DNA of 63,520 nt, the filler included, from Hyphochytrium catenoides (lineage: Eukaryota; Protista; Hyphochytriomycota): the NCBI GenBank assembly GCA_900088475.1. It is 11 parts of 11 records of this genome, joined end to end, with 100 filler letters (N's around TTAATTAATTAA, not from the genome) between each part and the next. Parts side by side here need not be neighbours in the genome. Positions count along the whole stretch, not along the records: positions 42,668 to 48,812 come from FLMG01002661.1; 10 more parts are not named here. One strand, given 5' to 3'. The notes beneath the pieces are model-generated. The model had not been told where the DNA came from. It was given only the letters and a program-made list of their open reading frames with translations, and made no database searches. Shown here piece after piece: positions 42,433 to 49,217 of the stretch (its first letter is position 1; every line of letters starts with the position of its first letter). Position numbers and translations under genes: made by a program.

Positions 42433-42699
42433 GGTGCGTGGGAAGTGAGGCTCACTCATCCCTATGCGCTCTCTTCCAGCACCGCCGTGTTACTGCCAAT
42501 CCTTCCTCTCCAGGCGCCCTGACTCGCTCTTTCTCCTGCCGTCTCTAGTATCTCCCATCCGTTGCTCNNNNNNNNNNNNNNNNNNNNNNNNNNNNNNNNN
42601 NNNNNNNNNNNTTAATTAATTAANNNNNNNNNNNNNNNNNNNNNNNNNNNNNNNNNNNNNNNNNNNNAAGCGAGAAGAGAACCATCTAGATCTCTTTCC

Positions 42700-45600
42700 A
42701 TCTTACCAGCAAAGCCTCCAGTCGGCTCAGCTGGTCCTCGACTTCCATCAACTCGCGCTCACGTTGTTCCTGACACATCTGCAAGGCTGCGAAAGGCAGT
42801 GGAGGATTAGAGTTAGGGAAGGACAAGGCAATTGTCAGGGTCAAAGCCCGTACATTCCTAGGAAATAACGCCAGGAAAAGATGGACGAGGTGCCATCCTG
42901 GGCTTAGGGATAGACATGAAGATAGCGCTGAATGGGTCTGAGAAGAAAGACGAGAGAGAGAAAAGAGAAGTGCCTTCCGGTTAGAAGAGAATACCTTTGG
43001 CTCGCGCCTCCATCCTCACTCTTTCTCTCTCTTTTAACTCTTCCCTGCGCATCACCTCGTCCTCCTGCTGCAGCTCGACCTCAGGAGTCCAGCCAAGGAT
43101 CTCCCTAACAGAGTACTCTTCCACATCCCACGAGTAATATCTGCGCCACCGAGAAAGAGGATGTTAGGCCAAGAGTACGAGAGTGAAGAGACAAAAGGCG
43201 CTAACCTAGAGAGAGAATTCGAGAAGAACCAGGCTTTTTCCTAGCAAATGGTCAGTTCAGGACCGAATGGAGGGAGGAACAGGTGGAGAACAGAGGGAAG
43301 AGAGTAACCTCAAGGAATAGGTGAATGAGGACTCTGGACAGGAAGGAGAGAGAGAGAGAGAGAGAGAGAGGAAGTAGCCGCCGAAGCTGCGAACCGGTAC
43401 CTCATTCTCCATTCTTCCTTCTCCTCCTCCTCTCTTTTCACTCTAGGCAAAATGGTCTCCGTATAGGGGGCGAGAGAGAGAGAGAGAGAAAGCTGTGCTA
43501 GTAGTTGCTGCTGCTTAATCTTCTCCAAGAAGGTCCGAAGGAAGAGGAGGCGAGACGGCTTATGGCCAAAGTACCAGCGGTGGAAGCGGACCACCGACAA
43601 AAAAGGAAGAAGTGCCGGAGCGTTTGACGCTGGAAGGGTACAGACAGGAGAGAGTGAGGTTCATCCTAACGGGAGAGAGCAAAGAAAGAGAATGACCACT
43701 GCTGAACTAAATCTAGAGCTTACGCCATCTTTTAGTACAGAGAACAAGAGAGAGGGAGAGAGAGAGAGAGAAAAAAAGATGAAAGAGATATAAAGCGGAG
43801 AGGTATCGACAGTTGAAAGAGAGAAGCAGCGGTAGACTGAATAGAAGCAGGCGTACAGACAGATATTGCTAAAAGATGGAGACTGAAGATGACCCTGATG
43901 AGAGAGACAGAAAGTAAAGGCATCAGAGGCCATCTACCAGTGACTGTGAAGTCCTGTCGAAGGAGCTCTTGCGCCGGAAGAGGAGACGGAGCTGCCACGC
44001 TCACTTCAGGCAGCAACGCCGCAGCTGCGGCCTCTTCCCGCAGTAACAGCTGTCGTACAGGGAGGGCCGAAGAAGAAGGAGAGAACCACCAGGAGGAGAA
44101 TAGCTCCAGATCATCTTGCCTGTTGATGAAAGAGAGAGAAAAGAATATCGCGACATTGAGAGAGGAAGCAGAGCAAAAAGAGAGAAGAGAGACACAGAGA
44201 GAAAAGAAGTCATTGAGCGTCATCGACTATGTAGATCATATATTTCACTTCTTTCTTCTCTCTTACTCGCTCTCGGCCTCAGCAAGAGGGTCTGGCACCC
44301 TCAGGCCTTCTGCTCCGCCCACGGCTATGACCGTGGGGTCAAGAAGAACAAGAGAGAGTTCCAACTCTTTCTCTTCCCCGGAGAGGGAGGTGGGAGGGCA
44401 AAGGATTGCCAGATTGTAGTCCGGAAGAACGATGGGCTCAAAGAGAGAGAGGGAAGGCGGTCTCTGCGTATCAAGAGCTGCAACAGGGAGAGAAAGTGAG
44501 ACAGACGGAGAGAGAGTCAGGCAGACAGAGAGAGAGAAAATTGAAGAGACTAAGAAGAGAGAGGGCGATGTCACCAGTTTTAAAGGTAACCGCCGAAGGA
44601 GAGAGCAAGCAAGAGGGGGAGTAGGGAGAGAGGGGAAGAGAGACACATAAAAGAGAGCCAAAGGCAGAGAGAGAACAAGGCAGAGAGAGAACGAGGACGA
44701 GAGACAGAGAAAGAAAGAGAGAGGGAGAGGGAGAAAGAGAGAGACAACCGAGCCACTCACCTTTCCTGTACTTTTCATAGTAAGGCTGCTGTACGTTTGC
44801 TAACATGACCTGAGGGCTGCGATAGGGAAAGGAGAAGAGAAGAGAGGACCAGAGAGAAAGACTTTCGTAGCGCTGCTGGGCGGCCCAGAGCCATTCCGTG
44901 CGAGCGGACAGTCTCTCAGCCTGGAGACGAATATCTTCCTCCTTTCTCTCCTGCCAAACACCATTAGAACAGAGAGAGAGACAAAGAGAGGAAATAACAG
45001 CAGGCAGAAGGTCAGTGTAATCGCGTAGAGGCAGAGAGTGGTGGCAAAGGAGAGAGAAGCGGTAACTAATCTAGAAGAGCAACTAGCGGCGCTCTTTCAG
45101 TTGCTCTTCAGTTGGACTCTTTCATTCTTGTTCTCTCTCTCGCTCTCGCTCTCGCTGTCCCTCTCTCACTCTCTTCCCCTCCTACGTCAAAGCTTATGTC
45201 ATGCCCCTCACCTGTTTAGAAGCTTTGCCTTTTCCCTTTTTTCTCCCCTCCGTGGTGCGCCCAGTGGCGTACCAAAAGCAGAAGCGGCGCCATCGAACGC
45301 TGTCAAGTGAGCCATCTGCAAATCGAAGGCAGCAGGAGAGAGGAGGGAACGGAGGAAAAAGTTCAATGAGCGACTAAGGAGTTATCTTGTAGGAATGGGA
45401 AAGCGAAAGAGTAACAAAGGGAGCCTGGATCGCATTCTCATTCTCACCTTCTCACCCTGTTCACTCTCCCTCTCTCTTTCTCTCTCTCTTTTCTTTCTTT
45501 CTCTCTCTCTCTCTCTCGCTCTCTCTCTCTTTCTCTCTCTCTTTTCGTTTCAGAAAGCGAACCCTATCACTAGTTGTCTCTCTTACCTAGCACGTCTCCT

Positions 45601-45991
45601 GGATCTTCCTTCGGGACATTGAAGGTGTAGCCCTGATATTCTCCTTCCTCTTTCCCTTCATCGCACTCCAGCTGACGCCGGAACTGCTGCAGGACTTCAG
45701 CTGATTGACCAGCTTTCTGAAGCTCTTGGAAGAGGAGACGCCGACGATGCTAAAAAAAGCAGAGAGAAGATGGAAAGGGCGAGGGTTTAGCGCGGGTGGA
45801 GAAAGGATAGAGAAACGTGAGAAGTAAATCGAGGCAGAAAGGGGAGATATAGGAGAGAGAGAGAGAGGAGAAAAACGAAAGAGGATAGCGGGTACAAGGA
45901 AACAGAAAGTAGGAGATAGAAGGTGACAAGTGAGAATGGGAGTGACAAAGAGAGAGCCACGCACACAGAGTGGGAGACAGATGAGAAGCAG

Positions 45992-46032
<41 letters not shown>

Positions 46033-48040
46033 GTGAGAGTGCGAGTGCGAGGGAGAGAGTAGTAGAAGGGCCGAAAAAAGCCAAGAGACATTCGCTGCTC
46101 GCCCAAAGAGGAAACAGGAGGAAGGAGAGGGCAGCTGGTGAGAGAATGGAACTCGACAAGAGGATCTGAAGCCAATGCAGGACGGAAGGGAGAGGAGAAT
46201 CGGTGGCTCCCTACGCTGGAGCCTGAGAAGAACTTGGCGAAAGTGCTCCATTTCTTCTTCTCTCCGGCGCCCAGATTAGCGTCTCTCTCTCCTCCCTCAG
46301 GCACTGGGATCCGAGAGGAGCTCGCAACTTTTTTTGTGGCTTCGTCCTTGCACGCGACCAGCAGCTCGACACGCTGCTGATCCTCGGATAGAGAGGCCCA
46401 GACAATGAAGAACTGCGAAGTAAGAGCAGAAGAGAGAGTGAGAGAGATGGGGAGAGAGAGAGAGACGGGGAGAGAGAGAGAAAGAAGGGAGAGTAGGTTA
46501 GAGGAGAGAGAGAATAAGAGGGAGAGACGGGAAGTTGATCTTAGACGGTTTCTGCCCTTCTCTATTTGCTGGATCTCTTTCATTGGCTCCCTTTACAGAG
46601 TCGAGAACGCCTTTCGTAGATCAATCTCTCTTTCTCTCTCTCTTTCTCTCTCTCTTGATCATCAACGTCTCTCCCCTCGTCTGTGAAACTGGGCTTGATC
46701 TTTCCGTTTACGCTCTCTCCTTTTCTCACTTACCTCAGGGGGCGGCGTCTTGTCCCCCAGGCTCCGGACTGCCTGGCCAGGGTCCAGAGCTCCTTCAGAT
46801 TCCTCGTCACTGAAACCATCAGAGGAAGAGTCTTCTTCGTCTTCCTCTTCCTCTCCCCGGGACTGAGAGAGACTGAAGCCTATCCCCACATTTCCTCTCT
46901 TTCTCCGGTTTCTTCTCTCTCTCTCCTTCGGATCTATGGGCTTGCCGTGCAGAACTGGTTGCCGGCTCTGTCTCTCGGGAGGAAGCGAAGGAGAGAGATC
47001 ATCTATCATTGACAACACGCGCATTCCCTTGTTTCTTCTCCCATGGCCCTCCTCTCTCTCTCTTTCTCCCTCATCAAAAGCTTCTTCATTCTCTTCTGTC
47101 TCCTTTTTGGGATGAGGCGCATCGTCCTCCTTCTTTTTGCCAAGAAAGAAGAGAACCTTGCCGTCCTCAGGTCGAGAGGAGGAATAGAGTCCAATGTGCG
47201 CCGGGTCTTTCTTCTCTTCGCTATGTTTATCGTCTTTCTCTCTCTTTCTCTTTTGTCTCTCTCCAGATACCTCCTTTCCTTCTTCCCGCAGTGACCTCAC
47301 CTGCGCGAGGATGTTCGGCAGATGAGAAGGGGATGCGGGAGAGAGAGGAGCAAAGGGAGAGGTAAGAGAGAGAGGTGGAGAAGGAAGGCGAGAGGAAGAG
47401 GGAGAAGGAGATTCGGCTGCGCTGTAAAGCTTTTCGCTTTCCACCGCTTGGTCATCTCTCTCTCTCTCGACCTCTCTCTCTTCCTCCTCGTCTGTCTCCG
47501 TCTGAGGGTACTTGGAGTCTATGTCTTTTTCTTCTTCGGATTCTGTCTCTTCAGCTAAAAGCCCTATCGAGAGAGAGTGAGTTATAGTGTCAGGAAGAGA
47601 GAGAGAGAGAAAGGAGGAGACAGAACAAGCCCATAGATCCGAGGGAGAGAGAGGCATAGAATCCTAAAAGCCTCAGACAGAGACAGACGAGGAGGAGGGG
47701 AGAGAGGTCCAGAGAGAGAAAGATGACCAAGAGAGACGACATGTGTTCTCTGGGAAGCGATGGAAGAGAGAGAGAGAGAGAGAGCCCTCTTACCTGAACC
47801 ATTTACTGGGATCTCGAGCGATAGCATTTTCAGGGTAGGGCCGCTATCGGCCTTTGTTTGCGTTACTTTCTCTCCTTCATCAGAACTCTCTCTCTCTCTC
47901 TCTTTTGTCTCTCTCTGTTTGATTCCTCCATCGAGAGACAGCTGAGAAGCTGACCAGTGCAAGCGGTAGATGTGAGAAGGAGTGAAGACCGCGATATCTC
48001 TTCCTTCCCTGCCGCGTCAGAAAAGTGATGAGATGGACGG

Positions 48041-48095
<55 letters not shown>

Positions 48096-48725
48096 GCGAC
48101 GAACGTAGCGAGAAAGAGAAGGAATTTGGATAAGAGTACGAAGAGAGAGTGAATGAACGAGATGGACAGGACCAAAGAGAGAGAGAGTAGCAACTTTGGG
48201 AAGCTGAAAAGAAATGACTTGTGGGAGAGAGAGGATAAGAGTGAGAGACACAGAAAAGGGAGAAAAGAGAGAGAGGAGGAGAAAGGAGAGAGAGAGGAGA
48301 GAAGAGAGAGAGAGACAGAGACAGAGAAAGAGAGACAAAGAGGGAGAGAGAGAGAGAGAGAAAGAGAGGGAGAGAGGGAGAGACACGGCGCTCACCTTTG
48401 GCCACAGAACACCGCTGCCAGAGGAGAAGGAGAGAGAAGGTAGGAAGAGCAGAGAGAAAAGCGTGTGGCGAGCCCTGAAGGCAGGAGATGAACCAGCCAA
48501 AGAAGGAGAGACCCAGCAGAACAAAGAGAGAGAAGCACTTGGGAGCCACTGAGAGAAGAAAAAGGAGGGGAGGAGAGAGAAACGGAGACAATCTTTCCCT
48601 CGTGCTTCTTGTGCACGAAGAGCGGGGTCCGGATCACGGCAGAGGGAGAGGAAGACACGCTAGGAAGAGGGCTCTGGCCTTGATCTTTCTCTTGGAATCG
48701 GGAGGAGAAGCCTGGGTTCCACAGC
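42700..48725 (-). CDS. Large multi-exon hypothetical protein (Glu/Arg/Ser-rich, both ends lost in gaps)
   Basis: A series of in-phase GT-AG exons, e.g. ...KTPPPE|FFIVWASLSEDQQRVELL, MLANVQQPYYEKYRK, VRFHRWYFGHKPSRLLFLRTF and YYSWDVEEYSVREILGW. I recognise no family. Confidence 0.6.
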
Positions 48726-49217
48726 TGTAACAGATGAGAAAGAGAGGCACATGAGAAGAGAGAGAGAGAGGGGAAGGGACAAAGAGAGAGAGAGAGAAAG
48801 AAAGAGAGAGAGNNNNNNNNNNNNNNNNNNNNNNNNNNNNNNNNNNNNNNNNNNNNTTAATTAATTAANNNNNNNNNNNNNNNNNNNNNNNNNNNNNNNN
48901 NNNNNNNNNNNNATGTCTCTCTCTCTCCCTTCAACCTTTTCTTTCTCTCCCTAATGGTCTTCCATGCTTCGCTCCTCCTACCTTCTTTTCTTATGGCCAC
49001 CTCTCTGGTCTCTCTTCTCTTTTGACTCTAACTCTTCGCTTGGCTCCATCGTTAGCGTTCCTTTCGTCTCTCTTTAGATGTTCGGACAATGGCGCTGTAT
49101 AAAGCTAACTGAGCCTTCTGTTTGCTCTCTCTCTCTCTTTCTCTCTTTCTCTTCTCTCTGTCTCCATCTCTTTCGCTGTTTCTCTCTTCCCTTCTCTCAC
49201 CGTATTTTCCCTCCCAG

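Follow-up and report, generated by a model that had tools for sequence, protein, structure and literature searches.

Four kinds of described system resemble parts of the locus reported here. The closest are template-switch mutations: template switching makes reverse-complement repeats, and with them perfect hairpins, in a single event (PMC8794818), and two further papers treat such mutations as a source of reverse-complement repeats and hairpins (PMC5453318, PMC10710096). The events described by Loytynoja and Goldman (2017, PMC5453318) and by Monttinen and Loytynoja (2022, PMC8794818; 2023, PMC10710096) share with our repeat an ungapped, nearby inverted copy with sharp ends, a short spacer and the capacity to form a hairpin; they mostly span tens of bases, whereas the repeat here measures 95 nt and we infer the event rather than reconstruct it. 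The inverted-duplication model for young plant MIRNA genes (PMC3237417) likewise involves an inverted, gene-derived duplicate that forms a long hairpin complementary to its founder gene; at our locus, however, the founder exon is itself one arm and lies in the same transcript, not at a separate locus. The AC/GT repeat bridges of fish introns (PMC4691745) and the conserved complementary regions of human genes (PMC8052449) also place complementary segments around splice signals in one pre-mRNA. Those cases are backed by their recurrence in many introns, by conservation or by experimental work, whereas ours is a single locus and the rest of the piece of sequence around it shows no excess of local pairing. 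Finally, the editing complementary sequences of ADAR substrates (for example PMC3479170) share with our locus an intronic complement and an exon that together form double-stranded RNA. We see the repeat described below as one more case of an event type already on record.

The DNA analyzed (the window) is a stretch of 63,520 nt from Hyphochytrium catenoides, and all positions count along it. The repeat lies in the piece at 42668-48812 (FLMG01002661.1), called the 6-kb piece below. The original prediction, made from the sequence, was that a minus-strand intron carries a 95-nt antisense copy of its own downstream exon, and the three elements concerned are as follows.

47447 to 47541, minus strand: exon-side (left) arm, located by inverted-repeat scan, direct count and local alignment, and lying inside the open frame 46665-47663.
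47637 to 47731, minus strand: intron-side (right) arm, located by inverted-repeat scan and direct count.
47542 to 47636, minus strand: spacer of 95 nt, the future hairpin loop, delimited by direct sequence reading, fold and frame check.

These arms form the longest inverted repeat in a scan of the 6-kb piece (95 nt, 84% complementary, with 95 nt from arm to arm), and a direct count confirms the predicted pair with 80 matches in 95 ungapped positions. Gapped local alignment does not lengthen the repeat at either end, and the arm boundaries are therefore sharp. Every non-repetitive word named in the prediction is common to both arms, and 60 of 71 positions still match when the left arm's two (TC)n runs are set aside, so that microsatellite content, just as had been argued, is not behind the complementarity. 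Within the piece, the repeat is unique. The runner-up among 95-nt ungapped inverted repeats scores 69 at any distance (a microsatellite pair, 45448 versus 48042) and 60 with a spacer of at most 500 nt, and the top scores in 60 shuffles, which preserved dinucleotides inside 100-nt blocks and hence the local purine/pyrimidine patchwork, were 66 and 58, respectively. The RNA duplex between the two arms has a predicted energy of -137.7 kcal/mol, compared with a mean of -46 and a best value of -86.7 kcal/mol in a swapped control that paired the exon arm with all other 95-nt windows of the piece, and the fold of 47430-47750 has z-scores of -9.3 (minus strand) and -11.7 (plus strand). The repeat thus stands above shuffled sequence, above the runner-up repeats and above swapped windows, the first and last being comparisons that the prediction had proposed, and its fold is extreme; we therefore regard it as a specific duplication and not as an effect of composition.

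Chance pairing between CT- and GA-rich tracts, or a fold-back chimera in the assembly, would give a similar picture, and the piece is indeed full of (GA)n and (CT)n, with microsatellite inverted repeats that reach 77% over 83 nt. The counts just given, both over the whole arm and outside the (TC)n runs, speak against chance. The arms of a chimera would be identical, whereas these differ at 15 sites (16%), and each arm's own version recurs in Logan unitigs from several public runs of the same organism, of which X1 and X2 represent separate samples and X3 the same sample as X1 (S1). In X1, a 180-nt unitig on 47483-47585 covers the left arm and loop and a 198-nt unitig on 47621-47754 covers the loop and right arm, and the right arm is also present in X2 and X3 unitigs. 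Microsatellites were masked in this comparison and no single listed unitig spans the entire repeat; X1 is possibly the assembly's own sample, which makes the unitig support good and not fully independent. The differences between the arms and their recurrence in unitigs therefore disfavor the fold-back misassembly that the original prediction had named as grounds for its own rejection, and we consider an artifactual or chance origin largely refuted and highly improbable.

Two 95-nt inverted arms with sharp outer ends around a 95-nt core would also suit a foldback or MITE-like transposon that was inserted, with 95-nt terminal inverted repeats, across an intron-exon boundary. Word depth in X1 is 20-21 over the arms and 20-25 over the unique flanks, and 2442 over the microsatellite at 47233-47269; the arms, being no deeper than their flanks, therefore belong to a single locus and not to a dispersed foldback or MITE family. 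Moreover, a target-site duplication is absent, the flanks (...TTCCACCG/arm and arm/AGAGACGA) having no direct repeat in common, and one arm lies in frame in a long open reading frame. We accordingly hold a transposon to be a very improbable source. The repeat is real, specific, confined to a single locus and no artifact of assembly.

The terms exon and intron refer to a gene model that we built by hand from canonical GT-AG signals on the minus strand; its putative elements, with splice junctions marked by a slash, are listed here.

47794 to 48008, minus strand: putative upstream exon, with the acceptor GCGGCAG/ before 48008 and a long (CT)n-rich tract ahead of it.
47555 to 47793, minus strand: putative intron of 239 nt, from the donor CAG/GTAAGA (GT 47793-47792) to the acceptor UUUUAG/ (AG 47556-47555).
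47565 to 47564, minus strand: AG of an alternative candidate acceptor, GAUAG/, 9 nt from the acceptor at 47556-47555.
46734 to 47554, minus strand: putative exon with the exon-side arm (start at 47563 with the alternative acceptor), ending at the donor GAG/GTAAGT (GT 46733-46732).
46412 to 46215, minus strand: putative exon, with its acceptor at 46413 and its donor GT at 46214-46213.
45749 to 45589, minus strand: putative exon, with its acceptor AG at 45751-45750 and followed by the last donor.
Within the spacer, minus strand: branch-like motifs CUGAC (about 47590) and CUAUAAC (about 47582) and a polypyrimidine tract, read from the sequence alone.

Joined, the four putative exons give one open frame of 464-467 codons, a result that is slightly circular as support for the frame given that the donor at 46214-46213 was picked partly for frame. 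The open frame at 46665-47663, of 333 codons, is longer than in all of 1000 block shuffles (mean 126, maximum 326). The exon-side arm starts 13 nt inside the putative exon and encodes, in frame, an acidic low-complexity stretch (EETESEEEKDIDSKYPQTETDEEEEREVERERDDQ), and the intron-side arm sits in the middle of the 239-nt intron. In minus-strand RNA the former is purine-rich and the latter, an antisense and decayed copy of it, is pyrimidine-rich. Both acceptors at 47555-47565 keep the frame, and their dual use would add or drop three residues (GLL).

Frame length as stand-alone evidence of coding was considered and dropped. Two minus-strand stretches, 47866-48659 and 45753-46592, contain stop-free frames of 256-280 codons that run mainly through CT-rich, clearly non-coding DNA and give LSLSLS-type translations; frame length alone is unreliable here because purine-only and pyrimidine-only DNA has no stop codons. 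Coding support was taken instead from the block-shuffle test and from frame continuity across the splice sites. We also considered an internal intron at 47300-47444, a stretch that is CT-rich on the sense strand, and set it aside with some uncertainty, the removal of its 145 nt shifting the frame into stops.

Searches for relatives of the putative product returned little. Neither a word-indexed search nor HMMER against 1.84 billion representatives found a homolog of the 296-residue exon translation, and Pfam searches with ten minus-strand open segments gave nothing at E <0.02, all scores lying under the family cut-offs. The ESM Atlas returned only low-scoring look-alikes among disordered proteins, exact-product look-up found no recorded gene products for three open reading frames, and no metagenome relatives were found by protein scan or with an exact 36-nt word taken from that arm of the repeat which lies in the exon. 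The product of the putative multi-exon gene is an orphan or a fast-evolving protein of low complexity, or else it belongs to a genome whose proteins are absent from the searched collections. The coding and intronic labels of the original prediction accordingly fit a frame-consistent GT-AG model, but no homolog was found to confirm them, and we use them as probable assignments. In a rhizosphere metagenome (2024, X4), a 151-nt contig of depth 2 matches the non-repetitive exon stretch 46900-47001 with zero differences, a hint that soil harbors the source organism or a very near relative of it.

The public reads contain two forms of the locus. In X2 and in S1 (X1 plus X3), both are present at a depth ratio of about 1:1 over 47328-47453 and over the right-arm region 47629-47754. 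Over these two regions the forms differ by 7-8%. At 47328-47453 there are nine differences, among which, of those listed, six fall at 47358-47415; the right-arm region has 10 substitutions and one inserted base, with seven substitutions (47659-47697) and the insertion (behind 47710) among the differences listed and the other three substitutions outside them. Elsewhere there is one difference over 46900-47357 at summed depth, and 47483-47585 and 47794-47878 show a single form at near-total depth. Conserved putative exons beside a diverged intron arm fit the gene model. The forms differ most within the rejected internal intron at 47300-47444, and we treat the diverged stretch 47358-47415, with some uncertainty, as low-complexity coding sequence. 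Two forms at these depths point to either a highly heterozygous diploid or a recently duplicated locus. We also rejected the idea that the variant right-arm unitig is a left arm placed in the wrong orientation, since it is identical to neither arm and runs past the repeat.

The differences in the right arm bear on how the two arms have evolved. Five of the seven listed substitutions (47665, 47668, 47670, 47679 and 47697) create a pair with the left arm where the reference form has a mismatch, and the other two (47659 and 47671) break pairs. No compensating change in the exon arm is seen over the visible 47483-47541 (59 nt), where five of the seven partner positions lie, the outer exon arm (47447-47482) being hidden by the repeat mask in this comparison. 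Since pairs are both gained and lost between the forms, the ancestor of the right arm was therefore nearer to a perfect complement (at least 85 of 95), with each form losing pairs independently. Such one-sided changes look like the neutral decay of a duplicate and not like compensation; the clustering of the pair-restoring changes at 47665-47697, four of them at 47665-47679, could alternatively reflect homogenization of the arms. Read on the opposite strand in the frame of the exon, the reference intron arm gives SEGERGIES*KPQTETDEEEGREVQREKDDQ, compared with the coding SEEEKDIDSKYPQTETDEEEEREVERERDDQ; the copy is recognizable and contains a stop codon (asterisk). Counting wobbles, the arms form 87 pairs in plus-strand RNA versus 83 in sense RNA, and seven of the 15 mismatches would be G-U wobbles only in plus-strand (antisense) RNA and are A-C in sense RNA. 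A stop-bearing antisense copy and seven wobbles that favor the plus strand fit a drifting copy better than a sense-RNA stem under maintenance.

We posit that the repeat probably arose by a single local inverted duplication through a template switch, with the copies then drifting and the hairpin a by-product. About 95 nt would have been copied as a reverse complement to a site 95 nt away, and the simplest route would be a template switch during DNA replication; one copy would now lie in the acidic low-complexity exon and the other in the adjoining upstream intron, the two having presumably drifted since to 84% complementarity. The sequence has the features expected of such an event, namely an ungapped reverse-complement copy, sharp boundaries and a short spacer, and protein and DNA searches found no relative for comparison. 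We lean toward copying from exon to intron because 95 is not divisible by three, and an intron tolerates a change of such a length. The pre-mRNA would incidentally gain an imperfect stem of about 95 bp that would cover the purine-rich start of the exon and whose loop would contain the 3' splice site together with the likely branch sites and the polypyrimidine tract. The repeat would then be a clear case, found in nature, of a local inverted duplication lying across a probable intron-exon boundary, and would illustrate how a single mutation may equip a pre-mRNA with a very stable predicted hairpin around a splice site. Hairpins of this kind are raw material for structure-regulated splicing or for new hairpin RNAs.

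The long minus-strand duplex of the original prediction is supported by computed RNA folding. The minus-strand pre-mRNA is predicted to form a long imperfect stem of about 95 bp, with perfect runs up to 17 bp, and to hold the 3' splice site in its loop: the AGs of both candidate acceptors lie inside the 95-nt spacer, as had been proposed, and the predicted stem encloses both of them together with the polypyrimidine tract. An effect of such a hairpin on splicing or on small RNAs is possible, and we are cautious in speculating about a role that selection has shaped. The most likely selected function is none, and since the repeat is present in both forms and the reference form has no indel over its 95 nt, mild selection for pairing could also have acted.

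One functional reading is that the hairpin is a selected splicing regulator that adjusts how often the intron is retained or which of the two in-frame acceptors, 9 nt from each other, is used. By this route the stem would mask the purine-rich exon start and keep the 3' splice site, branch site and polypyrimidine tract inside its loop. The position of both acceptors and the branch-like motifs in the loop, the start of the exon-side arm 13 nt into the exon, the very stable stem and the retention of the repeat in both read forms are consistent with this reading, and earlier studies document splice signals that are bridged or masked by RNA structure (PMC4691745, PMC8052449, PMC10790352). Against it stand the lack of any compensatory change in the visible part of the exon arm, the listed arm differences lying in the intron arm only and both making and breaking pairs, and the seven mismatches that wobble only in antisense RNA; we consider a splicing regulator unlikely.

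The hairpin might instead be a source of small RNAs, as a young hairpin-siRNA or proto-miRNA locus that acts on its host transcript. It is long and imperfect with sizable perfect runs, one of its arms is complementary to a probable protein-coding exon, as expected of a small-RNA locus born by inverted duplication, and plants are known to acquire new hairpin genes in this way (PMC3237417). In addition, the Rfam family RF04209 (MIR7533, from plants) matches 47446-47732 over the full model length on both strands, scoring 89.4 bits (plus) and 84.2 bits (minus); these scores are far from the gathering score of 230 bits and place the hairpin below the threshold for membership. That both strands match suggests a generic hairpin shape, and the match reflects a long CT/GA hairpin of this sort and its composition, not membership of the family. 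Furthermore, one arm is the host exon, so that dicing would destroy the pre-mRNA. We regard a small-RNA source as distinctly unlikely. The E-value of the MIR7533 match is near 1e-17 despite the sub-threshold score, and E-values for long low-complexity hairpins may mislead.

More broadly, the hairpin could be a selected self-regulatory device that either gates the enclosed 3' splice site or is cut by nuclear RNase III, a proposal that we judge quite unlikely. If it were true, the gene would hold down its own expression through a stem built from its own exon and retained in both read forms, so that part of the regulator would be coding; likewise, should the hairpin control splicing or give rise to small RNAs, a regulator with one arm in coding sequence would be a rarity. 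An exon paired with an intronic complement is also the classic architecture of a site-selective ADAR target (PMC3479170). The intron arm might on that basis be an editing complementary sequence, and the duplex a double-stranded substrate for A-to-I editing of the exon; we hold this to be exceedingly improbable. To our knowledge ADAR is found in animals only, and this restriction, in a system that is animal-specific and usually conserved, stands against its action here.

We return to the local inverted duplication as the preferred account, and ask how far the pairing extends beyond it. The original prediction presented the repeat as the clearest case of a wider design in which introns pair with exons, and this part of it found no support within the 6-kb piece. 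Outside the repeat, the best complement of each 40-nt window averages 21.7 of 40 within 500 nt, compared with 21.1-21.4 of 40 at 1-3 kb, and sliding 320-nt folds of the minus strand have ordinary z-scores (about -3.5 to +2.3) everywhere except over the repeat. Near and distant complementarity being equal and the folds ordinary, the repeat is therefore a one-off within the piece, an outcome that the original prediction had itself listed as refuting its general idea. Intron-exon pairing elsewhere is a matter of composition, with exons rich in purines and introns in pyrimidines on the sense strand and with GA or CT microsatellites in both, and control duplexes of up to -87 kcal/mol give a measure of the pairing that such composition can provide by itself. 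This calls for caution in this genome, where intron-exon complementarity appears designed and is mostly composition.

Two smaller observations concern the same background. CT/GA tracts give inverted matches between 45460-45551 and both 48041-48124 and 46430-46504 (75-83 nt at 76-78%, and 48-52 nt at 92-94%); these sit 0.9-2.5 kb apart and set a high chance background for the piece. On the sense strand, (GA)n in the putative upstream exon and (CT)n just past the 5' splice site could pair (47886-47916 and 47765-47784); the fold z-score there is an ordinary -0.9, and this pairing around the 5' splice site therefore looks like microsatellite complementarity.
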